IMG/VR virus record: IMGVR_UViG_3300033995_001164
Location: 186,001-250,000 of that record
DNA: 64,000 bases
Strand: one strand, 5' to 3'
Positions 733 to 62,696 of the stretch are shown here, one piece after another (within the stretch, counting starts at the first letter, position 1; every line of letters begins with the position of its first letter). A program made the position numbers and the translations under genes. Under the pieces are notes generated by a model. It saw only the letters and a list, made by a program, of their open reading frames with translations, was not told the DNA's origin and did no database searches.

Positions 733-2235
733 ATGTCAATTTTAAGGTCTTATATAGATAAAAACAATACCATTATTTCAAACTCTTATGTTAATACAGG
801 AAGGAACCCTGTTATTGAGTTAAATTTTGGTGCTTCTGATTTAATTGTTCCAAACTTTGGGTATACGAGATTCATCTTCGATTTAGATTTATCTTTACTA
901 CGTCAAAACATTCAATCGGGTGTAATCTCAACAGGTTGTACTACCGGAATGACACATACATTAAACATGACTAATACCTCTTCATTTGATAACGAATTAT
1001 TAAATACTTTCATGTCAAACGAAAGAAGAAGGGCAACCTCATTTGATTTAATCCTATTTAGAATCCCTGAGATTTCCGGAACTACCGGAGGACCTCAACT
1101 ATGGGATGAAGGTGTTGGATTTGATTATAGTGATTTTAATGTTAGTAAAGGAACCTCAAATGGTTCTTCAACCCCACTTACCTATGTTGATAGTCGTGCA
1201 TATTCGTCAAGACCATCTAACTGGTTTCAAACAACCACAATAGATAATTGGTCTCAACCGGGAATATATGACAACACTAATCAAGGGGTTGTTAATTATT
1301 CGGGATTAACTATTGTTAGTCGACAACATTTTGAATTAGGTAATGAAGACTTATATATGGATATGTCCGCCGAAATTAATGGAGTGTTAAATGGAAGTAT
1401 CACAGGAGTTACCGGGTGGGGATTGGCGTATCTCCCTCAAATTGAGAATATTTCAGGTCTTACCGATAGTTATAGTGTTGCATTCTTTTCAAGACAAACC
1501 CAGACGTTTTACCAACCATTCCTACAAACAACATATAATGATTTAATTCAAGACGATAGAAATCAATTTCTAAAAAACCAAGTTAATAAACTTTATCTAT
1601 ATATCTACCAAAATGGGAATTTTGTAAATTTAGATAGAAACCCTATTGTAAACGTTTATACTCGAGATAATTCACTTTGGTCAGGTGCGACCGGATTAAC
1701 TTCTTGTCTAATTACAAAAGGAATATATGAAGTCACTATTCCTAATGTATTTTCAGGATGTGCCGCCCCATGTGTTTTTTACGATGTATGGTCAAACCTT
1801 TCAATAAATGGACAAGGAATACCAAATGTAGAAAATCAATTTATTCTCCAAGAATATACTTCAGGAATACAAATTGGGTCAACATCTAAGGAGCCTCAAA
1901 AATATGGATTTAATTTTTATGGTATATTACAAAATGAAAATATCCTTAATACCGACATCAGGAAAGTTGGGGTAACCATTAAAAAGGCGTATACCGCTCA
2001 ACAAATGTTATTAGATGTTTCTTCATATTATCGAGTATATGTAAAAGAAGGGACGACTGAAGTTTTAGTTCAAGATTGGACCCCAATTAATAGAACACCG
2101 AATGAATATTATTTTATGTTTGACATGAGAGATAAAATACCAAATCAATATTATGTTGATATTCAAGTAAATACATCAGGTGAAAAAGACACCTATAAAA
2201 AACAATTAACCTTTAATATTGTAAATCACAAGTAA
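733..2235 (+). CDS. Putative virion structural protein (500 aa, beta-rich, Ig-like C-terminus)
   Basis: Long ORF rich in T/G/N/S, next to the spike gene and preceded by the ATATTTATA late-type motif at 711-719. Confidence 0.5.
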   Translation: MSILRSYIDKNNTIISNSYVNTGRNPVIELNFGASDLIVPNFGYTRFIFDLDLSLLRQNIQSGVISTGCTTGMTHTLNMTNTSSFDNELLNTFMSNERRRATSFDLILFRIPEISGTTGGPQLWDEGVGFDYSDFNVSKGTSNGSSTPLTYVDSRAYSSRPSNWFQTTTIDNWSQPGIYDNTNQGVVNYSGLTIVSRQHFELGNEDLYMDMSAEINGVLNGSITGVTGWGLAYLPQIENISGLTDSYSVAFFSRQTQTFYQPFLQTTYNDLIQDDRNQFLKNQVNKLYLYIYQNGNFVNLDRNPIVNVYTRDNSLWSGATGLTSCLITKGIYEVTIPNVFSGCAAPCVFYDVWSNLSINGQGIPNVENQFILQEYTSGIQIGSTSKEPQKYGFNFYGILQNENILNTDIRKVGVTIKKAYTAQQMLLDVSSYYRVYVKEGTTEVLVQDWTPINRTPNEYYFMFDMRDKIPNQYYVDIQVNTSGEKDTYKKQLTFNIVNHK

Positions 2236-2680
2236 TGAATAAAATAGTTAAACTAACGGAATCCGATTTAAATAGAATCGTAAAGAAAGTTCTTAAAGAA
2301 CAAGAAGTTGCTGATTATATGTTTTTTAGTAATCTTCAACAAATTAAAAGACAATGTGAAGTCTTATTAGAAATGGACCCTCAACAAATCGATGAAATTA
2401 TTAATGAAGGGGGGCATGATTGGGCGGATGACCATGTAACTGAAGCCAAAAATAATATGGACCAAGTATTTGATTTTTTAATGAATGAAACCAAAAAAGA
2501 ATATATCGATTATGAGGAGGTAAACGAAGGTAAAAAAAAAATGTTGCAACCAATAAAAAATTATGGAAACAATCTTTAGATTGGGCGAGGCAACGATATG
2601 ACGTTTGTCCTAGCGCTTATTGTAATGGTGCTGCCGTCAAACGATACAATTCTAAGGGGGGTAAATGGAAAAAAGAGTAA
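2235..2680 (+). CDS. Leader-bearing virion protein that extends past a -1 frameshift at A10 (2532-2541)
   Basis: N-terminus is MNKIVKLTESDLNRIVKKVLKEQ. The 0 frame stops at 2579; the -1 frame 2540..2680 reads NVATNKKLWKQSLDWARQRYDVCPSAYCNGAAVKRYNSKGGKWKKE, resembling a small conserved phage domain. Confidence 0.6.
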
Positions 2681-2750
2681 TAATACTCTTTTTTTTCCGT
2701 AAAAAATTACATACTTAGACACTTTACCCAAAAACCATATATTTATATAT

Positions 2751-4553: not shown

Positions 4554-4585
4554 ATACTTAACTATAAATATACAATTAAAGAATA

Positions 4586-4831
4586 ATGGAACAAGAAAGA
4601 CAACCACTAGGGTTATTATTTGATAGCGTGGGATATAACTCCCCTGAAGATGTTGATAGATTAATAGATGACATGACTATTGAACAATCTTTTTATATCT
4701 TAACTCAATCGTTACACTATGTTCATAGTTCTCGATTATTTACGATGCAAGAAACTGAATTAGTTTCAAAATCGTTAAGGATACTACATAAAGTAATGTC
4801 GGGTAATAATGAATCAGAAACAACTGAATAA
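4586..4831 (+). CDS. Hypothetical protein
   Basis: 81-aa ORF followed by a terminator hairpin. Confidence 0.55.
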   Translation: MEQERQPLGLLFDSVGYNSPEDVDRLIDDMTIEQSFYILTQSLHYVHSSRLFTMQETELVSKSLRILHKVMSGNNESETTE

Positions 4832-5888: not shown

Positions 5889-6143
5889 ATGAAAAAGTTA
5901 TTATTATTGATTCTACTTATGGGAAGTTTATCGTCATTTTCACAAGTAAAGAAAAAAACCCCTAAACCCAAAAATTTGGATAAAGAGGTTAATCTTTCTT
6001 TAGATTCACTTTCCAAAATTTATAAAAAAAATGTTCTTGTGGTAAAAACATTTATTATAAATGACACATTAAAAAGATATATTGGGTACATTAAAGATGA
6101 TAAATTATACCACGAATTGATTGAAGTAAAACGTATTAACTAA
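5889..6143 (+). CDS. Small exported hypothetical protein
   Basis: MKKLLLLILLMGSLSSFSQ is a Bacteroidota-style signal peptide. Confidence 0.55.
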   Translation: MKKLLLLILLMGSLSSFSQVKKKTPKPKNLDKEVNLSLDSLSKIYKKNVLVVKTFIINDTLKRYIGYIKDDKLYHELIEVKRIN

Positions 6144-7269
6144 TACAACGCCCAATTAAACCATATCCTGTTTTAATTTTATCCGTACCTATTGGGGAAA
6201 ATACTTTAACTTTTTTATCCCCTGATGGTGAGTCAAATGGTATGGTAATGCCTTTATTAGATAAATTATAAATAACAAACTCAGTCTGACCTTGTTCTAT
6301 CATTCTTTTCATCTTCAACAATGGTGGTCCAATTTCATCACCTGATTTTTGATACTGAATTGAATTTGAGTTATTTAATAATTGTCTAACCAAATCATTA
6401 TAATCAGTAACTGTTATTGTTAAAATCTTACTTCCTGAAACGGCCACTGAATTATTAATTTTTAATTTAGTTAAGAAAAAAACAGATAATGGAGTATATT
6501 TCCAATCTTTATATTTGCTAACCTCACTTGTGATATAACCAGTGTCTGTTTCAATGTTACCATCATTTGTCGTGATAATTAACCTATCAGGTATTTGGCC
6601 TGGAGTAAATACCATTTCCCCTTTACCATTCAAGAACTCATCAGTTAAAACATAATTTAATTTTGGGTCTCCCTGACCTGCATTAATTCCTAAATTAAAA
6701 TTACATTTTGTACCTCCACCTTTAATATCAAAGGTTACAAATTGTTCTTGACGATATTTTTTAATTAAATCAGGATTTCTATTATCCCCTTTTGTTTTAT
6801 CATATGGGGTTGACCCTATTTTAACATCTGATTCGGATTTTGGAGTGTTAATTGTTAAAACATTCTTTTTTATTAAATCAGGAAATATTTCATCAAAATA
6901 TTTTTTAACGGAATTAGCCCTTGCCAAACCTAAACTACCTTTAGTCTCAAAACCTTTAGGGTTTGTAACATTAGATTCTCCGGATGAAATATTCACAACA
7001 AATTGACCACCGCCAGAATTTTTAATAAACTCTTCTATTTTAGGTTTTAATGATAATATAACATTTTTAACTTTTTCAGAATCATACTCACCAAATCCAA
7101 AATTATTTCCAATATTTTGAGTTGGGAAAGTTTTTTGTACGGGTGTGTTATTAATATTTTTTGAAATTAATTGTTCGTTAATTAAATATAAATTTTTAGT
7201 CGCACTTTCATGTAAATTAAGAATTCTATTTCTTTCATCCTTGTTAATATCCCAAGTTTGTTTAATCAT
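6136..7269 (-). CDS. Leader-bearing head protein with OmpA-like domain
   Basis: Leader ERNRILNLHESATKNLYLINEQ; SGES...SLGLARANSVKKYF resembles the OmpA-like peptidoglycan-binding motif. Confidence 0.5.
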   Translation of the reverse strand: MIKQTWDINKDERNRILNLHESATKNLYLINEQLISKNINNTPVQKTFPTQNIGNNFGFGEYDSEKVKNVILSLKPKIEEFIKNSGGGQFVVNISSGESNVTNPKGFETKGSLGLARANSVKKYFDEIFPDLIKKNVLTINTPKSESDVKIGSTPYDKTKGDNRNPDLIKKYRQEQFVTFDIKGGGTKCNFNLGINAGQGDPKLNYVLTDEFLNGKGEMVFTPGQIPDRLIITTNDGNIETDTGYITSEVSKYKDWKYTPLSVFFLTKLKINNSVAVSGSKILTITVTDYNDLVRQLLNNSNSIQYQKSGDEIGPPLLKMKRMIEQGQTEFVIYNLSNKGITIPFDSPSGDKKVKVFSPIGTDKIKTGYGLIGRCIS

Positions 7270-7364: not shown

Positions 7365-7967
7365 ATGAAAAAAAAAATTTTATTATTCGTTATTGGTGTT
7401 CTAAGTTTAGTTTCAGAATCTTGTATCTCCCAAAAATTTAAAAATGGTGATATCATATTCCAAACATCAAAATCGTCTCAAAGTAAAATGATTCAAATTA
7501 TTACCGAATCAAAATTAACTCATTGTGGTATAATTTTTTATCAAAACGGAAAACCTTACGTATTTGAAGCGGTTCAACCTGTAAAAATAACACCTTTACA
7601 AAAATGGATTAGTCGTGGTTTTAATGAAAAATATATTGTATCTAGAGTTAAACTCCCATTAACTAATAATCAATTAAAGGAAATGTACGGATATTCCAAA
7701 TCTTTACTTGGTAAAAATTATGATATTAAGTTTGAATGGTCGGATAAAAACATGTATTGCTCAGAATTAGTTTATAAAGTATTTGTTGCTGGAGACCGAT
7801 TTATTGGACGAGCAAAAAAATTCTCCGATTACAACTTAAACAATAAAATTGTTAAAGACGCAATCAAGAGAAGATATGGGGATTCTATTAATCTAAATGA
7901 AATGGTTATTACACCTGTTGATATATATCAAAGTTCTGAACTTAATACAATATACGATAATTACTAA
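7365..7967 (+). CDS. YiiX/YebB-like permuted papain (NlpC/P60) amidase
   Basis: GDIIFQTS...THCGII...YDIKFEWSDKNMYCSELVYK (His before Cys); signal peptide; TATCTTTG promoter upstream. Confidence 0.85.
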   Translation: MKKKILLFVIGVLSLVSESCISQKFKNGDIIFQTSKSSQSKMIQIITESKLTHCGIIFYQNGKPYVFEAVQPVKITPLQKWISRGFNEKYIVSRVKLPLTNNQLKEMYGYSKSLLGKNYDIKFEWSDKNMYCSELVYKVFVAGDRFIGRAKKFSDYNLNNKIVKDAIKRRYGDSINLNEMVITPVDIYQSSELNTIYDNY

Positions 7968-9094
7968 ACTTGGAAGAAACTATCTGATTGGTCTTTAAAA
8001 CTATTTACCACTGAAATTGGGGTTGGGAAACAAAAAGACCCCGTTTGAATCCCTCCTGATTTAGCTACATCACGATTGAACGTACCACAATTAGCGTCCT
8101 CGTCACCAATAGAGAAATCAAGAGCACTGTATTCTCTTTGCTTTACCGATGCATAATCAATTGCCCCGGATGGGTTTGGTAATTTAACGACCGCAACAGT
8201 CATTGACATTGTTGGTCCCGGTGGATAAGTTTTTTGTTTTGCCAATTTTGATACTTGTTTAGGGTTTAGTAGTTGACCATCTTTAATTTTACCTACTCTA
8301 CCTAATGGGTGGGATAACACTTTACCATACCCTTTTTTAGAACCAGGGTATCTACCAAATTCATAACAAGTTGCATTACCGTCCGGTGATATTATAATAC
8401 AACCACCGTGACCTAATTTACCATAAGTACCTTCTTTACCACCACCTGACGTAACTCTAACTAAAGAACCAAGTAATTGAGATAAACCACTTTTCCCATC
8501 AATTTTAGGTTGATATTCGGGGAATGCCCATATTAACATAAACCCACCGTTTTTTGACGGTGAAGTTACTTTATTAGTTTTATTACCTTTAATCTTATCT
8601 AATCTTCTATCTTTCCCTAAACTAACTCTAGTATTATCAATTTCGGTTGGATTTAATTCCGGTTTAAGTTTAAATTTATCTGAACCTATAGATGTCTGAG
8701 TTTTTTTCTTTACTGGTTGTACTTTAGTTTGACCAACAACGGGAGGTGTTACTGTGTTTATAACAGGAATTTTTTCATTATATATTTTACCCTTTATTGA
8801 ATTAATTGACTTAGGGTTATTTGCTAAGACCCAATTAGGGTTGTCCCCATCCGACGATTTAGCGTAATAATAATCATTCCCCATTTTACCGTAAACATAA
8901 GGGTCTCCCACATTACCTTTTTTGATTATGGCTCCTTGAGTGTTTTGAAGATTTTGAGGACCAACTTGTGGTTGTGTGGGTAGTCCCATATCTAAAGTAG
9001 GTTGTTCGGATAAATATTGTCTTTTAGTCGCAGACTCGTGAAGATTTAAAATTCGGTCTTTTTCTTCATTATTAATTAAAAATAAATTATTCAT
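7964..9094 (-). CDS. Leader-bearing head protein with putative permuted papain-like C-terminal domain
   Basis: Leader EEKDRILNLHESATKRQYLSEQ; GHGGCIII...YEFGRY...ANCGTF. Confidence 0.45.
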   Translation of the reverse strand: MNNLFLINNEEKDRILNLHESATKRQYLSEQPTLDMGLPTQPQVGPQNLQNTQGAIIKKGNVGDPYVYGKMGNDYYYAKSSDGDNPNWVLANNPKSINSIKGKIYNEKIPVINTVTPPVVGQTKVQPVKKKTQTSIGSDKFKLKPELNPTEIDNTRVSLGKDRRLDKIKGNKTNKVTSPSKNGGFMLIWAFPEYQPKIDGKSGLSQLLGSLVRVTSGGGKEGTYGKLGHGGCIIISPDGNATCYEFGRYPGSKKGYGKVLSHPLGRVGKIKDGQLLNPKQVSKLAKQKTYPPGPTMSMTVAVVKLPNPSGAIDYASVKQREYSALDFSIGDEDANCGTFNRDVAKSGGIQTGSFCFPTPISVVNSFKDQSDSFFQV

Positions 9095-9095: not shown

Positions 9096-9545
9096 TTATT
9101 TTGGTGTTGAAACTGTTGTTGGAATTTGTGGTGCGTTAATTTGTGGTGCCGGTTGTTGTGTAGTTTCGGCGGGTTTTAAATCTGATTCAACGGGTTTAAG
9201 TTGTAATTTGTTGATTGCGACAATATTTTTATAAATTGCATTTGCTGTTTTTGGACCATATAAACCATCAGCAATTAATCCCGATTGAAATTTATCGTTT
9301 AATAATTGTTGTAATACCTGAACTCTTGGATTTTTAACCCCCATTTTAATTGGTTGAACGTTATTTGTTGGAGGTGGTGGTGTAGGCGCCACAGGTGTCT
9401 CAGGTGTGGTAGTTGTGGTTGCGGGTACTGCAGTTGTAGGTGCGGCAACCGGAGTTGATTGTTCTGAAACAACAATACCTCTTTTATACCCTAATAGGTA
9501 TTTCATATTTTCAATCTCTTCTGATATAATTTTTTTCATCTCCAT
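9096..9545 (-). CDS. Leader-bearing protein with peptidoglycan-binding domain
   Basis: MGVKNPRVQVLQQLL...IADGLYGPKTANAI matches PG_binding_1 pattern; leader ends VVSEQ. Confidence 0.7.
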   Translation of the reverse strand: MEMKKIISEEIENMKYLLGYKRGIVVSEQSTPVAAPTTAVPATTTTTPETPVAPTPPPPTNNVQPIKMGVKNPRVQVLQQLLNDKFQSGLIADGLYGPKTANAIYKNIVAINKLQLKPVESDLKPAETTQQPAPQINAPQIPTTVSTPK

Positions 9546-9549: not shown

Positions 9550-10188
9550 TTATTGGCTTAACAAATCAATCATTTTTTCAACATTAAGAGAATCAAGATT
9601 ACCTGTTTGGTTTTGACCTAACAATTTTTGAATTTCCTTGGTTGTTCTTTGAGTTTGTTGTGTTATTTGTTGTCTTCTTTGTTGAATCTTTTGTTGTTGA
9701 ACCATTTTAGGGTCAACTACTTGTGTTTTTGTTTTCGTTGCCGGTTTTTCTTTTTTAGGGTTTGTTATTGGTGTTGTTGAAGTCACCTTAAATGTTCCTT
9801 TATTTAACCAATCACCAGTTTTTGATATATCGGCAGTACTTTGAATTCCTATCGATTTTAAATGGGCGATAATTGATTTCATTCCCGGAACATCAATTGT
9901 CTCCCCATTAATCATAGAAGGTATATCGGAATATCCACCACCTTGTAACGCTAATTGAGCATTTACTGCATTATATGTTGGTATGTCCTTAATTTGAGAT
10001 ATCCAAGCAGGTAGTCCTGATGTTAAAGTTGTGTTTGTTCCAGGTCCACGAAAACCGGCGTATAAGTTTCTAGCAATTTTTTGAGCCTCAGTTTCTTGTT
10101 CTGTTAAGTATTGTTTCTTCGCAGCACTTTCGTGAATACTTAAGATTCTATTTTTTTCCTCTTCATCCAAGAAATATAATTTTTCCAT
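9550..10188 (-). CDS. Leader-bearing head protein, weak annexin-like repeat
   Basis: Leader EEEKNRILSIHESAAKKQYLTEQ; IARNLYAGFRGPGT resembles the start of an annexin repeat. Confidence 0.45.
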   Translation of the reverse strand: MEKLYFLDEEEKNRILSIHESAAKKQYLTEQETEAQKIARNLYAGFRGPGTNTTLTSGLPAWISQIKDIPTYNAVNAQLALQGGGYSDIPSMINGETIDVPGMKSIIAHLKSIGIQSTADISKTGDWLNKGTFKVTSTTPITNPKKEKPATKTKTQVVDPKMVQQQKIQQRRQQITQQTQRTTKEIQKLLGQNQTGNLDSLNVEKMIDLLSQ

Positions 10189-11004: not shown

Positions 11005-12792
11005 TTATCTCAATTCTCTTAAATCGAATGTTCTAACACCATCAACAGTAATTCTTCCGTAAAATCTGTTGTTCACCATTTTTTTCGCGTAACGAGTCAT
11101 TATACCTTTAATCGGTGTAAAGTTGAATGGGTTGTACATTGTTGGAGTTAATTGTAATGGTACGTATGGTGCGTAGATGTATCCTGTGTCTAACAATGAT
11201 GTTCCTTTGTGTCCCATTAACACTTGGTTTGGTGGGAAGTAAGGGTCACGGTAAACTTGGTAACGTCCTGCAAGAGTACCAACTCTTTCAATACCCATGT
11301 TGTATTGGTCTTGCTCAGGAGAAGCATTTGATACGTGGAAGTATTCTAAATCGTCAAAGATAGCAGAGATTTCAGAAGAAACAACAATCCAGTTAGCTCC
11401 ACCTCTTAATGTAGATTTGTGGATTTGAGCAGAGATTTGGTTAATCGCTGTAATAAGCGTTTGGTTCCAGTCTTTTTGAGTATAAGGAACAGCAGAAGAA
11501 CCTAAACGTTTCCAACCATTGTAATCCCATCTCAAGTTCCAAGCAGCACCTTTACGTAAATCTCTTAAGATTTCACGGTCAATTTCTGCCGCCACTTGCT
11601 CAGATAATAAAGCTGTTAATTCAGCTTCAGCATCGATGTTGTGGAATGCAGCAACGTCTTGTGCCATTTCAGGAGACCATTGTGCTCTTAATTTTCTTTC
11701 TGTTACAGAAACAGTAACTGACATAAGGTCAAAAGAAACCTCACCAATTTTATCTTCAAACTCTAAGTTTTTGTAGATTTTATAAGATGCGGTGAATGCA
11801 GCATCATTAGCAGTTGAAGATGAGAATGTTGAACCTGTGTAACCGTCCATTGAACCACCACAAGTAATACAAACTGGTACTTGTAAGTCAACCTCTAAGT
11901 AGATTTTACCTTGAGCATCACATACGTTGTCATATTGACCACCTCCTGTTTTACTATCAGGGAATACTAATGTAGAGTTATTATTTCCGTATTCAACAAT
12001 ACCTTTACCATATTTTTGAGTTACAACTCTAAATAAATAAGGGTTATTTACGTTAGCCGCAGTTGTTGGGTTACCAGCAGCGCCTTTAATAGTTAAATCA
12101 GCTAAGAAAGATTCGTTATCCATTGGTTGACCGTCAGGACCGATTAATTTACCTGCTCCATCAGATGCGAAACCTGACATAACGATTAATACTTTTCTGT
12201 AATCAGATGTTCCATATCCTGAAACAACTAATTGGTCTCCAGCCCACGCAACAGTTGCAACAGACGCAGTAATAGCGGAAAATTGTCCTTTTGAATAGTC
12301 ATATAAACCTGGTGGGTCTAAAGCTGGTTCATTACCTTCATAGAATCTGTCATAAAGGTCTTTTGTATTATTGTAGTCATATCCACTGTTTGGTGTTTGA
12401 CCTTCAGTTGCATTTGGTGCTCCGTAAGGTGCGTAGTGAGCTCCCGGAGTTTCGTATGCTTGAATGTTTGGTACGAAGTAGAATAATTTACCAATTGGTA
12501 AGTTCATTGCTTGTACTGAAACGATGTCGTTAGATAATAATTTAGAGAATACTCTTCTAACGATTGGGAAAACCACTGTTTCAAATGCACCTGTATCAGA
12601 TGTAGATGATGCTTCGTTAATTAAATACGATGCTTGGTTTTCATATAATTGTGCAACGTTTTCTCTCATGTGACCTTTAAGACCCTCTAAGAATCCTAAT
12701 TTATCCCATTTGTTGATTGTGTCTTCTTTGATAACTTTAAGGTGTTTTAACCCGATGTTACCAACTAATCCTGATTCTAATAATGCTCCCAT
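11005..12792 (-). CDS. gp23: Major capsid protein, T4 gp23 family
   Basis: FPIVRRVF...VSVQAMNLPIGKLFY, VTERKLRAQWSPEMAQDVAAFHNIDAEAEL, YAPYVPL...PIKGIMTRYA. Confidence 0.95.
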   Translation of the reverse strand: MGALLESGLVGNIGLKHLKVIKEDTINKWDKLGFLEGLKGHMRENVAQLYENQASYLINEASSTSDTGAFETVVFPIVRRVFSKLLSNDIVSVQAMNLPIGKLFYFVPNIQAYETPGAHYAPYGAPNATEGQTPNSGYDYNNTKDLYDRFYEGNEPALDPPGLYDYSKGQFSAITASVATVAWAGDQLVVSGYGTSDYRKVLIVMSGFASDGAGKLIGPDGQPMDNESFLADLTIKGAAGNPTTAANVNNPYLFRVVTQKYGKGIVEYGNNNSTLVFPDSKTGGGQYDNVCDAQGKIYLEVDLQVPVCITCGGSMDGYTGSTFSSSTANDAAFTASYKIYKNLEFEDKIGEVSFDLMSVTVSVTERKLRAQWSPEMAQDVAAFHNIDAEAELTALLSEQVAAEIDREILRDLRKGAAWNLRWDYNGWKRLGSSAVPYTQKDWNQTLITAINQISAQIHKSTLRGGANWIVVSSEISAIFDDLEYFHVSNASPEQDQYNMGIERVGTLAGRYQVYRDPYFPPNQVLMGHKGTSLLDTGYIYAPYVPLQLTPTMYNPFNFTPIKGIMTRYAKKMVNNRFYGRITVDGVRTFDLRELR

Positions 12793-12833: not shown

Positions 12834-14336
12834 TTACCCTAATTTACTCATTAAATCTTTCATTCTAAGGAATTGAGGATTTTCATAAGTTTTTGATTCA
12901 AGTAGAGTAGTCGATGAACCTGTAGATACTGTTTTTTGAATTTTGTTTCCTACTGATTCACTAATTGATTTTTTAATTTCTGGTTTAGATAATTCACCTT
13001 TAATTGACTGATAAAGATTTTTAGATTCTTTTAAAGTTTCAACATCGTCAAATCTTCTTAAGATATTAATTTTCTCTTTTTTAGTAGTCGAATGTTCAGT
13101 GAACAATCTTGTTGCGTAAGCTAAGTTTGAATTAAATATTGCAACTTCATTAAGTTTTTCTCTGAAAACATTTAACGCTTTTCTATACTCTTCATTTTTC
13201 TCTCTTAACAACGAAACTTCTTCAGTAGATTCTTTATAAACTTTATTACGATTTGGTGTAATACCTTTTCTTAATCCTCTACCTTCTTTGGAACCCATTC
13301 CATAAGTGTGGGCAGCTTCTTTAGTTTCCTCTTTTTCAAAAGCTTTTCTTTTTAAAGTGTCACCTTGTTTAGTAGTGTAATCTTTATCACCTTTAAAGGT
13401 TTTAGATTTATCACCCTTATTCATTCCGTAATCACCTTCTTTTGTTTCTACCTTAACAACTTTGGATTTTCCCCCCATATTTGCCCCTGCTTTGTATTCG
13501 AATTTAGGTTTACCTGTCCCTACTGATTTAGGCCCTTGTTTTCTTTTTTCATTGAATCCTCCAGCCACTTTTTTAATTTCAGTTTTACCTGGTCCATTTC
13601 CAATTCCAACACCTTTAGGTTTGATTGTTGATTTCGCTTCTCTCACAGCTCTTCTTGAATTGTAAGACTCTTCTAAATCCTCTTCTTCGTCGTCCATCAT
13701 GTCATCTTCAAATTCGATTTCAAACATAATTTCTTCATCATCTTGGTCTAAATCGATGTCATTCGTACTACCACCCGCAAAAATCGCATCAAGTACGTCA
13801 TCTGTAGTTTGGTCATCCATTTCACCTAATTCATCAAATTCCATGTCGTCCTCTTCGTCTAACATTTCCTCTTCTTCTTCAGATTCCCCAAGTTTAACAA
13901 GATACTCAGAGTCATTATCGTTATCAGTTAAATGAATGTCATTACCGTCTTTTTGAACTATAATACCATCTTTTTCACCCATAGCTTTAAACACTTTAAG
14001 AATTTCTTCGTCAGAAGCTCCTGTTAAGTCAATTGGACTTTCATCAGAATCCATGTCCATGTCAAAATCCATGTCCATATCATCTTCATCTTCGTCTTCA
14101 TTATCAATGTCCATATCTAAGTCGATGTCTTCTTCATCAGAATCCATATCGTCTTCCACATCCATATCTAATTCAATCCCGTCTTCTTCTTGTTCAGAAA
14201 GAGATTCTTTTACTAGCTGATTGATTTCTTCCTTCATAGTTGAAGCAAGTATTCCTTTTGCGTTTTCGGCTATAGCTTCTTCAACTTGTCTCATTTGAAT
14301 AAGTGCCTCCTGTACTAATTTATTATTTTCTTGCAT
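12834..14336 (-). CDS. Prohead core scaffolding protein (gp22-like)
   Basis: Very acidic middle, coiled-coil C-terminus (LNEVAIFNSNLAYATRLF); lies between protease and capsid genes. Confidence 0.7.
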   Translation of the reverse strand: MQENNKLVQEALIQMRQVEEAIAENAKGILASTMKEEINQLVKESLSEQEEDGIELDMDVEDDMDSDEEDIDLDMDIDNEDEDEDDMDMDFDMDMDSDESPIDLTGASDEEILKVFKAMGEKDGIIVQKDGNDIHLTDNDNDSEYLVKLGESEEEEEMLDEEDDMEFDELGEMDDQTTDDVLDAIFAGGSTNDIDLDQDDEEIMFEIEFEDDMMDDEEEDLEESYNSRRAVREAKSTIKPKGVGIGNGPGKTEIKKVAGGFNEKRKQGPKSVGTGKPKFEYKAGANMGGKSKVVKVETKEGDYGMNKGDKSKTFKGDKDYTTKQGDTLKRKAFEKEETKEAAHTYGMGSKEGRGLRKGITPNRNKVYKESTEEVSLLREKNEEYRKALNVFREKLNEVAIFNSNLAYATRLFTEHSTTKKEKINILRRFDDVETLKESKNLYQSIKGELSKPEIKKSISESVGNKIQKTVSTGSSTTLLESKTYENPQFLRMKDLMSKLG

Positions 14337-14699: not shown

Positions 14700-15416
14700 T
14701 TATTTTCCTAAAAAGTCGTTTAATTTTTTCATTAAATCAACTGACTTCTCAACATAATCGTCTTTTTGTTTATGTTTTTTTTCTTCGTCTAAATTTTCCT
14801 CATATTTTTCTCTATCATCCGCATTTGAAAATAAATAAGCTCCCGGTGTGGACGGTGACGATACTAAGTCAAAACAGATTAATTCAAAATCTTCCTGAAC
14901 TTCATTTCTTTCTCCAACTTTTTTTAACGACCCAACCCCTCTTGATGATATACCTAAGGTTACTCCTTGTCTCATTAAGTTCGCTGCTATATCCCCTTTT
15001 GTGGATACAACTCCTGATTCGTGAAAACCCGGAGAAGTTAATAATTTTAGTTTTCCCATTAAAATATTTCGGTCCCACCATATTTCAGTGATAATATGGG
15101 ATACTCGGTCTAAATCGATTAAAGATGACTCAGGGTGGTTTAATTCGGATGTTGATAAACCTTTGTTAATTGTTTTTTGATAATTGTCCGCTTCTCTTCT
15201 TAATATCTTTTCAGGGTATGAACGACCATTTCTATTTGGTGTATCGTATTTTTGTAAAACAGCATAAAATTCAAATGGGTTTCTATAATCCATGTCTTTA
15301 GCTTCTTGTAAAACTTTTTCATTATGTTTGTCTTTAGGAGACACCCAACCGGCATCCGCTTCAACTAATATACCATGTCCTACTTCAGTCGCTTCTAATA
15401 TTCTTAATTGTTTCAT
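14700..15416 (-). CDS. gp21: Prohead core protease, T4 gp21 family
   Basis: NRNGRSYP, ELNHP, LGISSRGVGS, DLVSSPSTPGA motifs. Confidence 0.92.
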   Translation of the reverse strand: MKQLRILEATEVGHGILVEADAGWVSPKDKHNEKVLQEAKDMDYRNPFEFYAVLQKYDTPNRNGRSYPEKILRREADNYQKTINKGLSTSELNHPESSLIDLDRVSHIITEIWWDRNILMGKLKLLTSPGFHESGVVSTKGDIAANLMRQGVTLGISSRGVGSLKKVGERNEVQEDFELICFDLVSSPSTPGAYLFSNADDREKYEENLDEEKKHKQKDDYVEKSVDLMKKLNDFLGK

Positions 15417-16026: not shown

Positions 16027-16725
16027 TTAAATAGATTCTTCTAAACTTTTAAGTTTTAAAAAATTCATTTGGTCGAACTTTTCATCCCCCAATCTATCAA
16101 TTGTTTCGGAGATTTTTGTTTTTATTTCAAACTCTTGTTCCTTTTCTAAAATCACTTTTAATTTACTAATAGTGGTTTCACGTAAAACTTCAAATTTGGT
16201 TTCAAGTGATTTAGTATCTTCGGATATTAGTTGGAAAAATTCTTTTTTTGTTGTTTCATCTAAATTATCAATATATCCTCTTAATGTTTGGTTAGCAATA
16301 CTAACCATTGATTTAATTGGTATATTAATTGACCCTTTAACTACTTTTTTATTTTCTTTTAAAACATTAATTATTTGTTTCTTAACTGTTAATCTTTCGA
16401 TTAAGTCCAACTTATTGGAATAAACTAAAGTATCTAAATCCTCGTAATTATTTTTAACGGATTCAATTAATGATTTAGGTAATTTTATTGTCGGTAAAAT
16501 TTTATGTAACAGATTAATACCTTCTTCTAAGAATTCTTTAGCATCCTGTTCAGATAAACCTTGAGGAGTACTTAATTGGTCATATAAAGCATAGGCTTTC
16601 GACATAGATTTATTGTTCAATACATTATGTTTGAACTCTCTTAGAGATTTTTTAAAATCTTTCTCGTCATTATATGACTCAAGTAGATTTTTTTCGATTA
16701 TGGATTTTAGGTTTCCGAAGGTCAT
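16027..16725 (-). CDS. Hypothetical head-associated protein
   Basis: 232-aa helical ORF directly downstream of portal; late-type motif upstream. Confidence 0.6.
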   Translation of the reverse strand: MTFGNLKSIIEKNLLESYNDEKDFKKSLREFKHNVLNNKSMSKAYALYDQLSTPQGLSEQDAKEFLEEGINLLHKILPTIKLPKSLIESVKNNYEDLDTLVYSNKLDLIERLTVKKQIINVLKENKKVVKGSINIPIKSMVSIANQTLRGYIDNLDETTKKEFFQLISEDTKSLETKFEVLRETTISKLKVILEKEQEFEIKTKISETIDRLGDEKFDQMNFLKLKSLEESI

Positions 16726-16750: not shown

Positions 16751-19567
16751 TTAGGAATTTAGTAACTTATCCAATTCTTTTGAAATTTCTCCTAAAGATT
16801 CTTGTCCATGACCTAAATTAATCATTTGAGCCCCTTCTATTAAGTTATTCTCAACCAACATATTTAAGTTATTAATTCGAGATTCCGGGGTTATTTCCGC
16901 TTCTCCTCCGACTGGTGGAGGTGGAACTGTTTCTTCCCCTGCCGGTGGTAATTCTTCGCCGCCTAAATCGGAGGTTTCAAATTCTCCCCCGCCAAATGAT
17001 GGAGGTGGTTCAGATGTTTCAGTTGAAGCTGTTTGGGTTCCTCCTGAGGTACTACCATAAAGTTTATCGATATTATCAAATAAACCTGTTTTAGTGATAA
17101 CCGTAGCAGTTGCCTTAAGCTCTTCCCCTACCGCTCTTTCAATTCTTTGTTGTTGTAAATCCAAACGAACTTCTTCATCTGACCATCCAAAAATATGTTT
17201 CTTAGCCCATGTTGCTGAAGTCGCTTGAATACCATTTCCTGGGTCCGCAACTAAATCTTTGTATAATAAAACTTTTTCTTTCCAAACGTCAATTTTTAAT
17301 AAATCTGCTTGGGTTGATGGATTACTTAATCCTAATGTGAAATTATCCAATTCGTCTTCAAATCCTAATAAAAATAAATGGACGATTGCAATTTTATTTA
17401 ATTCTGCAACCATACTTTTTTGAATTCTATTAATTGTTCTAGCAAAACGAATATCTTGTAAAGATAAATTTTTACCATCTCCTACAACTTCTTCAAAACC
17501 TAAAAATGCTTTAGGTACACGAAGAGCTGTTAATAGTTTCTTTTGGATATATTCAATATCGGCAATTTCTGAAAGGTTGGTCGCCCCTGGTAATGTAGTA
17601 ATCGGGTCAGGTGCTGAAGGGTCTCTAACTGGGATGAAATAATCTTGGTCTACCGCCATTTGGTTAAACCTCATGTCAACATTACCTGTTTTATTATCTA
17701 CAACCTGTTCTCTTTTAAATTTATTTGCAACTCTTTGTACGTATGCCTCGACATCGTCATCGTTCATATTACCAACAAATACTTTAAACATTCTTCTTTC
17801 AGGTGCTCTTGATGTACGATAAATTAACATCGCATCTTCTGATAGTAATAATTGTTTCCAAATTCTTCTTGCTTTCTCTAACATAGAAGTACCATAAGGA
17901 AGTTTTCTGTCGTCACCTAATAATCTAAAATGACCAATTTCCCATGTTTGGAATTCCATGTTTTTAATCTTCCAAGTAAAATGAAGAGATTTTTTGTCTT
18001 TATCTAATTCTTTAGTTATGTCAGTCGATATTTTTGCACTTACCCCTACTTCATGTCTTTCAATCTCGATTGTTGGTAATTGTTGAACACCTACAATTCC
18101 TTTTTCAGGGTCTAATTTTAAAAAAATAAAGTTATCACCATACTTGCAAGTGTTTCTTGTCCACATTGGTAGGTTAGTGTTAATGTCAAGTGAGTTATTA
18201 AACAAGTCGGCTAATACCCCTTTTATTCTGTTTGACTCTGAATAAATTTGTAATATAAACCCATCTTCATTTGTTGTGGTTGATTCTTCCGCATAAATGT
18301 CTAACGCTGCTGATATTTCAGGAGTGTTATGGGAAAATATAGTATCTGTTGCAAAGTTTTTATATCCGGGAACTGTTAAATCATAAACAGGAATAACTCC
18401 ATTAGGTTCTATTGACACTATTTTATGATTCAAATTAATTGAAGACCCCACACTTTTTGACGTAGAGTATTTTGATTTTTCAATACCATAAGCGTCGAGG
18501 AATGTTGACCAATCTTTGTAACCGGAATTTGTAATATCTCTTTGTAATTTCCTGTATGAAACATTCAACTTTAAAGATGTTTTTTTCAAAGATTTCTCAA
18601 TTCTCGCCGTTTCAATGATATTGTCAAAAGGTATCGAAAAATATGCTGGATTTTTATTACCTTTACGTTTTCCACCCCAAGTCATTTTACCTTTACGTTT
18701 GGCAACTTCAGACATTTTTAATCTATACTCAGGATTAGACCATAATTTTTCATTATTCAATCTTGCATGATATGCTCTATGTTCTGAAATATCCATAATT
18801 AATAAATTTTCAGGAAGATTATTTTTCCCATTAAAATCAATATGGTGTACTTCTTCGTTGTCTTTTATTTCTACTTCATTATACCATTTTGCAATTAAAC
18901 TATGTTCTGATACCCACCCATGGTGTCCTTCATCTTTATTGCAAGTGTAAACCCAATTATAGTTTTGGTTATTATAAAATGATTTACGATAAAACGGCAT
19001 CATAGAATCCCCGTCTTTGAGGTTCATAACTCTCTCAAATGACCCATCTCTTTTCATTAATTGGTGTTCCCATGTTGTGATAATAAATGAACCATCGTCA
19101 AAAATAACTTTATATGTCATTTCATCTCGAGTGTAATGTGCATTTCGAGCCTTTGAGGGTACGACTTTTTTCAAATTGTGGTCATACGAATAAGTGATAA
19201 ATTCGTAATCTCTGCCTTTGTCAGCAAGTTCTTTTATGGTTATAAAACCATCAGGAGTTGCTATTTTTGTGTCTCCGGCGATGCAATATTCCATACTTTC
19301 ATAATCGTATTGTGCCGATAATCTTGACGGTTCATAATATATTGCCTGAGAATATAAATTATTCTCAACTTTTGCCCATTGATTGGTTAAATAAAAGGTT
19401 TGTTGCGCCTGTAACTTTTCTTTCTCGTATTCTTCTTTACTTTTGGTACGTAGTAATTCCTTTTTATCAAACTTAAAAGTTGGATAATCTTGGTTTAATT
19501 GAGAATTAGGCCCAAATGTTTGGGATAATCTCTGCCATACCGTCATATTATTTTGTTGTTCGCTCAT
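16751..19567 (-). CDS. gp20: Portal protein, T4 gp20 family, interrupted by an intein
   Basis: TPEISAALDIYAEE, PYGTSMLEKARRIWKQLLLSEDAMLIYRTSRAPERR, DYFIPVR, DIEYIQKKLLTALRVPKAFL. Confidence 0.93.
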   Translation of the reverse strand: MSEQQNNMTVWQRLSQTFGPNSQLNQDYPTFKFDKKELLRTKSKEEYEKEKLQAQQTFYLTNQWAKVENNLYSQAIYYEPSRLSAQYDYESMEYCIAGDTKIATPDGFITIKELADKGRDYEFITYSYDHNLKKVVPSKARNAHYTRDEMTYKVIFDDGSFIITTWEHQLMKRDGSFERVMNLKDGDSMMPFYRKSFYNNQNYNWVYTCNKDEGHHGWVSEHSLIAKWYNEVEIKDNEEVHHIDFNGKNNLPENLLIMDISEHRAYHARLNNEKLWSNPEYRLKMSEVAKRKGKMTWGGKRKGNKNPAYFSIPFDNIIETARIEKSLKKTSLKLNVSYRKLQRDITNSGYKDWSTFLDAYGIEKSKYSTSKSVGSSINLNHKIVSIEPNGVIPVYDLTVPGYKNFATDTIFSHNTPEISAALDIYAEESTTTNEDGFILQIYSESNRIKGVLADLFNNSLDINTNLPMWTRNTCKYGDNFIFLKLDPEKGIVGVQQLPTIEIERHEVGVSAKISTDITKELDKDKKSLHFTWKIKNMEFQTWEIGHFRLLGDDRKLPYGTSMLEKARRIWKQLLLSEDAMLIYRTSRAPERRMFKVFVGNMNDDDVEAYVQRVANKFKREQVVDNKTGNVDMRFNQMAVDQDYFIPVRDPSAPDPITTLPGATNLSEIADIEYIQKKLLTALRVPKAFLGFEEVVGDGKNLSLQDIRFARTINRIQKSMVAELNKIAIVHLFLLGFEDELDNFTLGLSNPSTQADLLKIDVWKEKVLLYKDLVADPGNGIQATSATWAKKHIFGWSDEEVRLDLQQQRIERAVGEELKATATVITKTGLFDNIDKLYGSTSGGTQTASTETSEPPPSFGGGEFETSDLGGEELPPAGEETVPPPPVGGEAEITPESRINNLNMLVENNLIEGAQMINLGHGQESLGEISKELDKLLNS
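18326..19285 (-). mobile_element. Intein (320 aa) with HNH homing endonuclease in the portal
   Basis: Starts CIAGDTKIATPDG (block A) and ends VYDLTVPGYKNFATDTIFSHN followed by Thr; internal EVHHIDFNGKNNLPENL. Confidence 0.92.
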
Positions 19568-41214: not shown

Positions 41215-41520
41215 TTATTCCATAAAATCGTTGTCATCGTAATCAAATTCACCAACTTCAGTGCCACCCATTTTTGTTCCATATGGGATGTCTTTTGGGT
41301 GAGATTCGTAACCTAATTCTTCACCATAAGAATTTGGGTGAAATCCAAGTCCGTGTTGGTAGGTACCAACAATTTTACCGGTTTCAATGTCTTTTACTAA
41401 TCTTTCAGGTCGTTTTTTGGTGGTTTCATAATGAGATTGTTCTGAAATAACCTTTCCTGATTTATACCCAAAAAGGTATTTTATATCACCTAATTCTTCA
41501 GTTAATATTTTCTTATCCAT
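41215..41520 (-). CDS. Leader-bearing protein
   Basis: Leader ILTEELGDIKYLFGYKSGKVISEQ, paralogous to that of 9096..9545. Confidence 0.6.
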   Translation of the reverse strand: MDKKILTEELGDIKYLFGYKSGKVISEQSHYETTKKRPERLVKDIETGKIVGTYQHGLGFHPNSYGEELGYESHPKDIPYGTKMGGTEVGEFDYDDNDFME

Positions 41521-45599: not shown

Positions 45600-45986
45600 T
45601 TATTTATTTTCTATAAGTTCATCTAAAACAGCCGGAATGTATTGTTTAAACAATTTAATTGCATTCATTTTAAGTTCAATCATTTCCTTAATATTGTCAG
45701 ATAATTTTTTAATCTTATCGTATTCATCCGGAGTTAATAAGAACACTTCTTTTGGTATAGTGTTATATGTCTTCCCTATAATTGGACTTGTTATTTCAAT
45801 AATATTGGTATCTCCATCGTAATAATACGGTGTTAACCCCTGAGACTTAAATTTAAGTAAACTCATTGGAGTTATATCAAAATCTAATATTTTTCTATTC
45901 TCCGGAAGTTTTGGTTTATCCATCATTTCTTTGTGTTGGTTTAATATATCGTCTTTTTCTTCTTCGGTAATTATAAATTTTCTCAT
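45600..45986 (-). CDS. Leader-bearing protein
   Basis: MRKFIITEEEKDDILNQHK; late-type motif upstream. Confidence 0.6.
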   Translation of the reverse strand: MRKFIITEEEKDDILNQHKEMMDKPKLPENRKILDFDITPMSLLKFKSQGLTPYYYDGDTNIIEITSPIIGKTYNTIPKEVFLLTPDEYDKIKKLSDNIKEMIELKMNAIKLFKQYIPAVLDELIENK

Positions 45987-56321: not shown

Positions 56322-56327
56322 AAATTG

Positions 56328-56525: not shown

Positions 56526-56536
56526 AAATATTTTTT

Positions 56537-56622: not shown

Positions 56623-56626
56623 CCCG

Positions 56627-60699: not shown

Positions 60700-61623
60700 T
60701 TATTTCAATCTCCATTTAGCGTCTTCACCATAAGATAATGGCCCACCCGTTCCACCTCTTAATGTTTTAATATAATTGTCAACAATACTAAAAACTCCAC
60801 CCCATTTACCGTTAAATTGGTTGGCACAAGCCTGAACTTGAGATTTTAATGAATCAAATTGACTTTGAGGTATGTCTTCTCTTTTAGTTTTCCAATAATC
60901 ATAATATTGTTTCACTTTATCTCGACACACTTTTTTATCTTGTTCTCCGGCAGCTGGTTTATACATGATTAAACCTCCAGGGAAATATTGTTCACTACCT
61001 TGAACATTAACTTTTTGATAAGTCCCAGATGCTAATTGTTCAGGGGTTAGTTTTTCAACATATCCTTCGTTTTTTATCCATTGATTGATAAAAGCTTGTT
61101 GTTCCGGAGTATAACCACCTTGTTTTGCAGTATTAACCTTTAATTTATATAAATCGTATTTTGGATGTTTTTGGTATAATTGAGAAAGTTCTGTATCTGT
61201 TACGGCAATGTCAGCTCTTTTTTTCCATCCGTATTGTTCCAATTCTCTTGCAATGTCAGTATCTACTGTTGCTTTTTGAGATGCTTGTGTCGCTTGTTGA
61301 GAATCCATTTGAGCAATCTTATCACATTTCCAATTACCACTTTTACTTCCATCTCTAAATTTATAAGTCATATCACCATAAAAGTCGATTTCTTTACCAC
61401 TTTTAGTAGTTGCACGATAAACAAATTTAGTTTTATCAGGATTTGTAAATAATTGACCATTAATTAAACATCCCGCAGCTTTAGCCTTTCTTAATATTTC
61501 TTCACCCGTGTTTGAAACTGGCGTGACAGGTACAATAGGTTGTATTTGTTCCTTCATCAATGATTTGTGCATTGATAAAATTTCATTCTTTTCGGATTCT
61601 TCTATAATATATCTTTTCTTCAT
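60700..61623 (-). CDS. Leader-bearing protein
   Basis: MKKRYIIEESEKNEILSMHKSLMKEQ. Confidence 0.6.
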   Translation of the reverse strand: MKKRYIIEESEKNEILSMHKSLMKEQIQPIVPVTPVSNTGEEILRKAKAAGCLINGQLFTNPDKTKFVYRATTKSGKEIDFYGDMTYKFRDGSKSGNWKCDKIAQMDSQQATQASQKATVDTDIARELEQYGWKKRADIAVTDTELSQLYQKHPKYDLYKLKVNTAKQGGYTPEQQAFINQWIKNEGYVEKLTPEQLASGTYQKVNVQGSEQYFPGGLIMYKPAAGEQDKKVCRDKVKQYYDYWKTKREDIPQSQFDSLKSQVQACANQFNGKWGGVFSIVDNYIKTLRGGTGGPLSYGEDAKWRLK

Positions 61624-61631
61624 TTTTAAAA

Positions 61632-62696
61632 TTAAGTATTAATCAATGATAATGAATCGTCCGCATCTGCTTGAACTGAGAATTCATCTGTTTGTGGTTT
61701 AACCGGTTGTTTAGATGCACAGATTTTTGTAACATCAGCATCAGTAAATGAGGTAAACCCTTTAGATGCTAACGCGGCTTTAGTCTTTTTACCAAATTTT
61801 CCGTCAGGAGTTAATCCTAAACATCCTTGAACTTTTGCAATTGTATTTGATTTACATCCATAGGAATAAGTTCCTGAACATGGTTTGTAAGTACTTTTAC
61901 CGGGTGTTTTACCACCTGTTTTATTACCACCTCCGCCACTACTAGTGTCTTTAATAGTTAATAAAGAATCCTCAACACAATTTCTAATTGGTCTGTATAT
62001 TTGTTTCCATTCAGACTCCGAATCAATGTCGATATCTAAATCATCAAATAAATCACCACTATCGGAATGTGCGTTATAATATTTAACTAACGCACAGAAA
62101 TCAGATGCAGTACCGGATTCTAATTTTTTGAATGCTCCAAATAATTTTTCTTCATCAGTTCCTCCTTGAAATCCGTAACTATCATTAACAATTGCGTCTT
62201 CAATATCATCAGTAATTGAACGTAAATCAGTATCTTGTAATTTTCGTTGTAATTTGGCAATTTTAATACCCTCAGATGAACACATTTCAAACATTTTTTT
62301 CACTTTGTTCATTCCCGTATCTTTTGTTACAAACCAATAAACTAATGGTAGTAACGCAAGTCCGGCTGCTCCTCCTACAATTGCTCCAGCTGCTGTCGCC
62401 CCAACCCCAAGAGATGATAACGCACCTACTAATCCCGTACCTTGTGACGCGGCAATTGCAGTTGCACCAGCGATTTTAGGTAACGCAACCCCCGCAGCCC
62501 CTAAAGCACCCGACGCACCTAATCCTGCTCCCGCAGCGGCTCCTAATCCAGCTCCTGCAACGGTTGGTGACACGTATTGTTCTTCAATAATTCCAATTTC
62601 TTTTTTATTTTCGTTCAGAGTTTTTGACATATCGTAAGACATCATCAATTTAACTCTTTCTAACGCCTCCGCCGGGCTATATTTTGGTTGTACCAT
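61632..62696 (-). CDS. Leader + Gly-zipper/hydrophobic + annexin-like + PG-binding protein
   Basis: AGAGLGAAAGAGLG...LALLPLVYWF; GGTDEEKLFGAF...YYN...GDLFDDLD; GCKSNTIAKVQGCLGLTPDGKFGKKT. Confidence 0.55.
   Translation of the reverse strand: MVQPKYSPAEALERVKLMMSYDMSKTLNENKKEIGIIEEQYVSPTVAGAGLGAAAGAGLGASGALGAAGVALPKIAGATAIAASQGTGLVGALSSLGVGATAAGAIVGGAAGLALLPLVYWFVTKDTGMNKVKKMFEMCSSEGIKIAKLQRKLQDTDLRSITDDIEDAIVNDSYGFQGGTDEEKLFGAFKKLESGTASDFCALVKYYNAHSDSGDLFDDLDIDIDSESEWKQIYRPIRNCVEDSLLTIKDTSSGGGGNKTGGKTPGKSTYKPCSGTYSYGCKSNTIAKVQGCLGLTPDGKFGKKTKAALASKGFTSFTDADVTKICASKQPVKPQTDEFSVQADADDSLSLINT

Follow-up and report, generated by a model that had tools for sequence, protein, structure and literature searches.

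Background and comparison with known systems

In bacteriophage T4, diverse internal proteins are targeted to the scaffolding core by a capsid-targeting sequence (CTS) of 10-20 residues (PMC5694885, PMC9026906), which is removed by the prohead protease gp21 (PMC9026906, PMC3012670). The internal proteins of T-even phages have only the CTS in common (PMC3012670), and the CTS has been discussed as a possible evolutionary tool by which various proteins are loaded (PMC9026906). Longer propeptides are known from giant phiKZ-like phages, and the paralogues gp53 and gp54 of SPN3US have identical N-termini with the rest of the proteins diverged (PMC5694885). The present analysis concerns N-terminal leader peptides encoded on a 64,000-nucleotide stretch, hereafter the window, of the IMG/VR virus record IMGVR_UViG_3300033995_001164 (bases 186001-250000). 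The record is a 309,177-bp contig with 31.6% G+C from a lake-water jumbo phage.

The minus strand of the window holds a T4-type head module (capsid, scaffold, protease, portal and terminase genes). Several open reading frames (ORFs) of the same window, referred to below by their lower coordinate, start with one of three leader families, designated A, B and C. The leaders are 22-33 residues long and, with one exception, end in Phi-x-E followed by Gln (Phi, a hydrophobic residue; below, a slash after Glu marks the module boundary and putative cut site). Judged from sequence, they are probably cleavable capsid-targeting propeptides, a longer and multi-class version of the T4 system of CTS and internal proteins. 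The tag principle is already known from T4; the multi-class long form and the metagenomic scale are what differ here.

The locus resembles the T4 system (IPI, IPII, IPIII and Alt) in its T4-type head, its S77 protease and an N-terminal tag that ends in (L/I)-x-E and is common to otherwise unrelated, fast-evolving accessory proteins. As the earlier note on this DNA had stated, the leaders are longer than the T4 tag; the comparison, made by length and description, sets 22-33 residues against 10-20. Unlike in T4, at least three unrelated leader families occur in one genome, the residue after the boundary (P1') is nearly always Gln, and carriers are many more, with 11 robust ones in the genome and 1319 class-B clusters in metagenomes. 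Peptidoglycan domains are frequent in the cargo, whereas T4 internal proteins are small, basic and anti-restriction.

phiKZ, 201phi2-1 and SPN3US are likewise jumbo phages with a gp21-related protease that cuts after Glu and with many processed head proteins. However, their propeptides mostly measure 80-160 residues and are not a few portable families on unrelated cargo. Heads of the phiKZ type also belong to a different lineage, whereas the head genes of the window are near those of T4 (Pfam Gp23, Portal_T4).

Two further systems share single aspects with the leaders. Domains of the type VI secretion system (T6SS) effectors TseH and Tlde1, which are enzymes delivered to the periplasm of another cell, stand behind class-B leaders (PF25218 and PF10908/PF03734). 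Unlike in T6SS, the delivery device here would be the phage head and tail, and no T6SS adaptor, PAAR/VgrG or cognate immunity gene was identified. Cargo-loading peptides of encapsulins are short terminal tags, at either end, that send diverse enzymes into the lumen of an HK97-fold shell. In contrast to the leaders, they are usually C-terminal, stay uncleaved and bind a defined pocket of the shell protein, without a protease or DNA packaging.

Three leader families

Profile hidden Markov models (HMMs) built from the window copies define the three families. Class A (consensus KLTESDLxRIVKKVLKE/Q) is carried by 2235 and by ORF 30886-32127 (-) read from Met35, and outside the window by genome positions 29954-30301 and 269475-269786. 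Class B (consensus EEKxRILxLHESATKxxYLxE/Q) is carried by 6136, 7964, 9550 and 60700, and more weakly by 45600, which was scored with an expanded class-B profile and was not among its seeds. Class C (consensus EIENMKYLLGYKRGIVVSEQ, to the cut point EIENMKYLLGYKRGIVVSE/Q) is carried by 9096 and 41215. Nine ORFs of the window, and eleven of the whole genome, are supported by these profiles.

In the scan of the genome, leader scores ranged from 17 to 79 bits, compared with at most 10.9 bits for reversed and five times shuffled versions of 905 ORFs; the leaders thus align beyond chance. All strong matches start at ORF residues 1-3 or right after an internal Met. The leaders end in VLKE, LINE, YLSE, VVSE, YLTE, VISE or LMKE, the exception being 45600 (KLPE). 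Throughout the genome's proteins, the motif [LIVMFY]xEQ is 2.7-fold enriched at residues 12-45 (35 vs 70 elsewhere, p = 7e-6), and [LIVM]xE[QAS] falls inside the first 13 residues of 34 genes compared with about 13 expected.

The earlier note had counted at least twelve ORFs with such leaders. Its motifs VLKEQ, LINEQ, YLSEQ, VVSEQ, YLTEQ, LVNEQ, RLSEQ, VISEQ, LMKEQ and IIEEQ were located in 2235, 6136, 7964, 9096, 9550, 22683, 39119, 41215, 60700 and 61632, respectively, and SLSEQ in the putative scaffold (coordinates and strands in Table 1). The nine profile-supported window ORFs bear the observation out, whereas 22683, 39119 and 61632 were not picked up by any profile and show no more than the terminal motif or a loose likeness to the leaders.

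The same note had taken the three leaders to be related to one another. Comparison with hhalign gave no significant match between classes, with E values of 0.52 (A-B), 0.27 (A-C) and 0.40 (B-C). The idea of a single leader superfamily was dropped on this result, and the classes are best treated as separate families. What they have in common is placement at the N-terminus, a Phi-Phi-[TSND]-E-[SE] beginning, a helical nature and Phi-x-E-Q at the end.

Constraint on the peptide and separation from the payload

Within a class, codons vary at many synonymous sites, including AGT/TCT (Ser), CGA/AGA (Arg) and CTT/TTA (Leu), and the DNA upstream of leader genes shows no conservation past a short motif. 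The constraint therefore acts on the peptide and not on the DNA. This finding bears on the explanation that the genes share their 5' ends as DNA-level cassettes for recombination or expression, with a functionless peptide, or that the genes are diverged paralogues. Shuffling of accessory genes at conserved junctions is common in phages, many other genes of this genome start with a stereotyped MKYIITES, and the upstream motif TATTTAT (see below) is held in common, as cassettes would have it. Nevertheless, the synonymous differences include switches between the six-fold codons of Ser and Arg, the leader peptide is more strongly constrained than the cargo, and the payloads have no detectable similarity and carry different folds or domains, so that this explanation is barely credible.

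Payloads of 22 candidate ORFs showed no similarity in an all-against-all BLASTP comparison (best E 0.005), in agreement with the unrelated C-terminal parts that the earlier note had described. Among 116 edges of N-terminal similarity, the rest of the protein was also similar in only 5. The whole-length similarity of ordinary paralogues was not found, and the Pfam domains of the payloads differ.

The boundary between the two modules shows in three families. In an alignment of 22 orthologues and paralogues of 6136, column identity was 0.66-0.79 at residues 1-30 and 0.19-0.47 beyond, which makes the leader the best conserved part; R15, I16, H20, A23, T24 and Y28 in the leader and P143 in the payload are invariant. 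The AlphaFold2 model of 6136 has a helix at residues 10-36, disorder at 34-43 and then a confident fold. Class-C orthologues of 9096 keep an invariant leader and a conserved peptidoglycan (PG)-binding domain, joined by a Thr/Pro/Ala linker of highly variable length. Residues 1-40 of 7964, searched in a collection of 5.8 billion proteins, returned 71 proteins of 206-508 amino acids (aa) with a near-identical leader and total divergence directly after SEQ; TseH-like, LysM, YkuD/Tlde1 and PG_binding_1 domains occur among them.

As for the payload labels of the earlier note, OmpA-like (6136), papain-like (7964) and PG-binding (9096) were borne out. The first payload domain of 6136 matched the OmpA C-domain 4rha in Foldseek (E 6e-5), and 9096 matched the PG-binding part of an endolysin in PHROG. 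The annexin-like label of 9550 is a weak lead only: in an atlas search, scores reached at most 0.73, with weak PG-binding and annexin leads (annexin 0.65).

Head module and protease

The major capsid protein aligns with T4 gp23, and its putative propeptide ends in LINE60/A61, which is invariant across more than 60 relatives; at the equivalent position, the capsid protein of Flavobacterium phage immuto reads IVSE/A. The leader of 6136 ends in the same tetrapeptide, LINE.

The protease of the window aligned with T4 gp21 (PDB 5jbl) at 1.3e-12. It keeps the motifs ELNHP and SSRGVGS (SRG-GS), which hold the catalytic His and Ser. The N-terminus of the protease itself reads RILE/A, which recalls LIE-9 of T4 gp21 (PMC9026906). 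Between the protease and capsid genes lies the putative scaffold, which found no family match in the family library and is dense in Phi-x-E sites, among them SLSE/Q and LVKE/S.

These data weigh on another explanation, in which the leader is a permanent, uncleaved helix for docking or oligomerisation on some other phage structure (tail, baseplate or replication compartment) or on a host structure (membrane or cell wall machinery), and E-Q is the end of the helix. The leaders are predicted amphipathic helices, as such a role would need, but their end motif is identical to that of the capsid propeptide, the homology breaks exactly after Glu and gives way to flexible linkers, and a gp21-type protease is encoded. 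A class-A-like helix also stands at the C-terminus of the 4110-4607 family and in tandem with class B in a metagenomic protein (see below), which suggests a portable binding module; T4 Alt has a C-terminal propeptide too (PMC9026906), so that a C-terminal copy is compatible with cleavage. Structure prediction of a complex of protease, scaffold and leader returned a score of 0.00 and no answer; it is counted neither for nor against cleavage, and in being uninformative it leaves room for an uncleaved helix. Taken together, we regard the uncleaved helix as unlikely and keep to the cleavable propeptide.

Upstream motif

TATTTAT was the most enriched heptamer upstream of gene starts in the whole genome (87 genes, 7.3-fold). 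In 68 genes, compared with 4 expected, it ends either 4-5 or 13-18 nucleotides (nt) before the ATG. It heads every transcription unit that holds a leader gene of the window (Fisher p = 8e-4 for the 13-18-nt class), and the same heptamer stands before the scaffold, protease, core and portal genes and before ORFs of 1581, 1684 and 822 aa. In the window it was found upstream of 733, 6136, 9550, 12834, 14700, 16027, 16751, 25433, 30886 (Met35), 41215 and 61632.

The distance is 14 nt for 733-2235, 6136, 9550 and 14700, 15 nt for 41215 and for Met35 of 30886, whose start is supported by it, 18 nt for 16027 and 61632, and 4 nt for 45600. Gene 60700 lies only 8 nt downstream of 61632-62696 and is for this reason probably co-transcribed with it. 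TATTTAT is probably the phage's own promoter, possibly of a late class, and its 4-5-nt class would give nearly leaderless mRNAs.

The T4 late promoter TATAAATA was not enriched (53 and 39 found vs 53 and 63 expected). A second motif, TAnnTTTG, which resembles the -7 box of Bacteroidota, was 2-fold enriched before mostly small non-structural genes and stood before no leader gene. Together with the occurrence in lake water and a class-B contig binned to Flavobacterium (see below), it hints at a freshwater Bacteroidota host.

Distribution in metagenomes and among relatives

A 33-position class-B profile was compared with 1.84 billion cluster representatives. At E <= 1e-3 it matched 1319 clusters, and 233 of them also passed E <= 1e-10. 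In the 148 best-scoring representatives, the leader is N-terminal in 136 (HES motif at index 17-19) and P1' is Gln in 122; the 124 payloads of at least 60 aa from this set sort into no fewer than 25 groups by BLAST. Domains with a name were PG_binding_1, OmpA, LysM, Tlde1/YkuD, TseH and PG_binding_3, all of which bind or cut peptidoglycan, and most payloads are unnamed. For class A, 79 IMG/VR loci gave 108 matches, 103 of them N-terminal or after a Met, with Gln at P1' in 69 of the 103. The payloads of these loci form 46 groups, often small genes in tandem arrays, and 2235-2579 by itself has 5736 database relatives with a conserved leader.

The leaders are restricted to viral sequence. Scanning of 185,579 bacterial and archaeal genomes yielded a single class-B match, on a 4-kb contig binned to the metagenome-assembled genome of an uncultured Flavobacterium. 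The contig is syntenic with 61632-63337, and the window gene is replaced there by a true class-B leader on an unrelated payload. Searches of GenBank phages with tblastn, using leaders of 26-34 aa, found no match at E <= 10, which is uninformative at such query length.

In the window, four leader genes follow the capsid gene. In the slot that separates the capsid gene from the conserved 733/2235 pair, the number of leader genes ranged from 0 to 4 across 20 relatives, and the block 9550-9096-7964 is present only in this genome and a twin contig. Variation in the slot consists of presence, absence and duplication. Wholly different payloads right after the capsid gene were considered for some relatives and ruled out, as these payloads are divergent orthologues of 6136.

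The great majority of the named payloads bind or hydrolyse peptidoglycan, and a C92 amidase with a signal peptide lies among the leader genes. Both facts would suit a leader that is an export, lysis-timing or inhibitory pro-segment of cell-wall-active proteins, independent of the capsid, that keeps peptidoglycan enzymes from acting or from leaving the cytoplasm until infection ends. Yet the leaders are charged and amphipathic, lack a hydrophobic core and are not Sec, Tat or lipoprotein signals. Most payloads have no cell-wall domain, class A sits on 46 mostly unnamed groups of small payloads, and the genes adjoin the capsid gene and have their upstream motif in common with the head module. A pro-segment of this kind is thus quite improbable, and the capsid-targeting propeptide remains preferred.

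Apparent variants of the tags were also seen. In the metagenomic protein P0174, a class-B leader is directly followed by a class-A-like segment (LRESDLKKIIDKLLLRE) and then by PG_binding_1, apparently as tandem leaders. Genes 4110-4607 (-) and 38429-39067 (+), with loci L033, L037, L068 and L073, form a family that starts with MKKNRINE/ATGS, a Phi-x-E/A as at the capsid site. Relatives in this family have a class-A-like helix (...KNESLQRIIKRVLKE...) at the C-terminus, where the window copy 4110-4607 reads LKVIKEQLST; the helix may be a C-terminal version of the tag.

Proposed mechanism and its weighing

The protease-removed packaging tag put forward in the earlier note fits the sequence evidence, namely the S77 protease, the LINE end, the E/Q boundary, the linker, the conservation, the upstream motif and the variable gene content; the relatedness of the leaders did not hold, and three of the ORFs are doubtful. 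Docking, cleavage, packaging and ejection would proceed as follows. A protein made late would carry an amphipathic N-terminal helix of 22-33 residues, of class A, B or C, and this helix would dock the cargo onto the core or inner shell of the assembling prohead. After closure of the shell, the gp21-type S77 protease would cut past the Glu of Phi-x-E/Q, as in LINE/A of the capsid protein. The cut would free the mature cargo within the head, and the cargo would exit with the DNA at the next infection.

Cargoes that bind or cut peptidoglycan would then work in the periplasm of the new host cell, and the abundance of peptidoglycan binders and hydrolases fits ejection into this compartment. Since leader and cargo would be separate modules joined by a linker, cargo genes could be gained, lost, duplicated and replaced among close relatives.

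Several observations weigh against this mechanism. No common ancestry of the leader classes could be detected, some of the leader genes stand at a distance from the head module, P1' is Gln at the leaders vs Ala at the capsid site, and some orthologues have Thr or Lys at P3 (YLTLE, YLIKE). Metatranscriptome contigs on 6900-12850 cover the capsid gene only, with a trace at 7099-7496, and hold no timing information. Over the capsid gene of this clade (10880-12850), contigs of freshwater and estuary origin reach a word depth of up to about 14,000, and the neighbouring leader genes are nearly uncovered at 85% likeness. Furthermore, as the structural model of the MKYIITES family (see below) suggests, resemblance of N-termini is by itself no proof of a detachable tag.

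A wider reading would make the leader classes an address code of jumbo phages of freshwater Bacteroidota. Each class would dock to a different prohead site or at a different stoichiometry. Between them, the classes would load a very large set of injected effectors with fast turnover, comprising over 1300 clusters of class B and dozens of payload groups of class A, many of which stand in tandem arrays. With short forms (MKYIITE/S, MKKNRINE/AT) and C-terminal copies included, perhaps a tenth of the genome's genes would belong to the system. We consider this wider reading rather unlikely.

Should the capsid-targeting reading be correct, sequence alone would reveal the head-carried, injected proteins of an uncultured, abundant clade of lake jumbo phages, without virion proteomics. 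The outcome would be a catalogue of hundreds of families, in which most would lack a known function and many would act on the cell wall. The CTS principle of T4 would then be general and diversified into several long, strongly conserved leader families, and the leaders would offer ready-made loading tags for the engineering of Bacteroidota phages. The exact E/Q boundary is a testable prediction on the specificity of a distant gp21-type protease.

Individual genes of the window

Coordinates of the leader genes, the doubtful members and the head genes are given in Table 1.

Table 1. Leader genes, doubtful members and head genes of the window, with their leader segments and profile or domain support.
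Feature	Coordinates	Strand	Leader segment and boundary	Support and remarks
Class-A leader gene	2235..2579	(+)	aa 1-22 (2235-2300), MNKIVKLTESDLNRIVKKVLKE/Q	HMM 54-59 bits
Class-B leader gene	6136..7269	(-)	aa 1-32 (7174-7269), LINE/Q	HMM 68 bits; OmpA-like peptidoglycan-binding domain
Class-B leader gene	7964..9094	(-)	aa 1-30 (9005-9094), YLSE/Q	Pro/Gln-rich linker; TseH-like papain-fold peptidase domain, Pfam PF25218 3.3e-8
Class-C leader gene	9096..9545	(-)	to VVSE/Q (9462-9545)	HMM 79 bits; Thr/Pro/Ala linker; PG-binding domain
Class-B leader gene, first in operon 9550-9096-7964	9550..10188	(-)	aa 1-30 (10099-10188), YLTE/Q	HMM 57 bits
Class-A leader gene, from Met35 of ORF 30886-32127	30886..32025	(-)	31960-32025, MKVIKLTESDLNHIIRRVIQTE/Q	HMM 38-56 bits at ORF residues 35-59; 357-aa payload
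Class-C leader gene	41215..41520	(-)	aa 1-27 (41440-41520), VISE/Q	HMM 7e-24; 74-aa payload
Class-B-like leader gene	45600..45986	(-)	MRKFIITEEEKDDILNQHKE...; without EQ, nearest Phi-x-E is KLPE/N	17 bits, E 2e-4
Class-B-like leader gene	60700..61623	(-)	aa 1-25 (61549-61623), MKKRYIIEESEKNEILSMHKSLMKE/Q	36 bits, E 1.5e-10
Doubtful member	61632..62696	(-)	...ERVKLMMSYDMSKTL...IIEE/Q	No profile match; Gly/Ala-rich segment follows
Doubtful member in head operon	22683..23537	(-)	...SNLTESQINVLHSKLVNE/Q at aa 28-45 (LVNEQ)	No significant profile match
Probable non-member	39119..39583	(-)	MRLSE/Q at aa 16-21	No leader profile match; Pfam DUF5856 1e-19
Major capsid protein, gp23 type	11005..12792	(-)		Pfam Gp23 6e-71
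Putative scaffold	12834..14336	(-)		Between protease and capsid genes; helical ends, acidic/basic middle
Prohead protease, T4 gp21 type (Peptidase_S77)	14700..15416	(-)		Pfam PF03420 1.4e-22
Putative prohead core protein	16027..16725	(-)		Dense in [LI]xE: 14 sites in 232 aa
Portal protein, gp20 type, intein-interrupted	16751..19567	(-)		Pfam Portal_T4 4e-71; Intein_splicing 2e-11
Large terminase, T4 type	19607-21364	(-)		

The start of 2235-2579 overlaps the stop of 733-2235. At 114 aa, its payload is truncated compared with the 153-aa orthologues, of which there are thousands with a Cys-rich end, and it stops after an A-run ('EGKKK'). In another frame, at about 2540-2680, the sequence '...RYDVCPSAYCNGAAVKRY...' is still encoded and looks like that Cys-rich end. 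The truncation within 2235-2760 could be a frameshift, an assembly error or slippage. For 9096, the true start is probably the second Met (MKKIISEE).

Gene 39119 also matches PHROG 858, named starvation-inducible regulator. A ferritin/Dps-like label for this ORF is a tentative reading of that name.

Look-alike N-termini were found in about 21-27 genes starting with MKYIITES(Q/K/R)..., many of them small and including 29633-29974 (-) of the window. Six of these genes are full-length paralogues, and their predicted alpha/beta fold includes the N-terminal helix as an integral part. They were rejected as carriers of long leaders, as helix 7-22 has a predicted local distance difference test value above 90 in a model with a predicted template modelling score of 0.76. 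A 7-residue mini-tag or mini cut site at IITE/S is speculative.

On the opposite strand, genes 7344-7967 (+) and 5889-6143 (+) lie among the leader genes and have classical signal peptides. The former matches Peptidase_C92, a permuted papain-like amidase (1e-28). They are candidates for secreted partners of the wall-active cargo, or for proteins with an immunity-like role towards it.

Relatives and other genome features

The nearest GenBank phages, at about 42% capsid identity, are Flavobacterium phage immuto, Microcystis phage Mel-JY01 and an uncultured 484-kb phage. With megablast, the head module matched no GenBank phage. IMG/VR contains hundreds of relatives at 80-93% capsid identity, and many lake-water metagenomes contain nearly all of this phage sequence.

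Leaders of classes A, B and C were not found in the head region of immuto. A 154-aa ORF of that phage (locus L001, 4756-5220) has another leader-like start, MKKQILSEQFRRMQKLAGIITESQ, and an S77 protease is also encoded there. Judging from this ORF, other phage clades may have their own tag families.

The portal intein (16751-19567) gave a weak HNH-like match (HNH_3, 0.004) under the Pfam cut-off. A phage-encoded double AAA+ chaperone resembling ClpB/ClpA occupies 27546-29594 (+) (AAA_2 4e-68, ClpB_D2-small 2e-23). The block 43150-56709 (-) contains 23 tRNA genes, and the call at 43240-43316 has a four-base anticodon (gtaa). A seven-member paralogue family comprises 2751-3659 (+) of the window and six genes scattered elsewhere in the genome; its proteins start with METKxCxKC..., are Cys-rich and zinc-ribbon-like at the N-terminus, and could be homing-endonuclease-like candidates.

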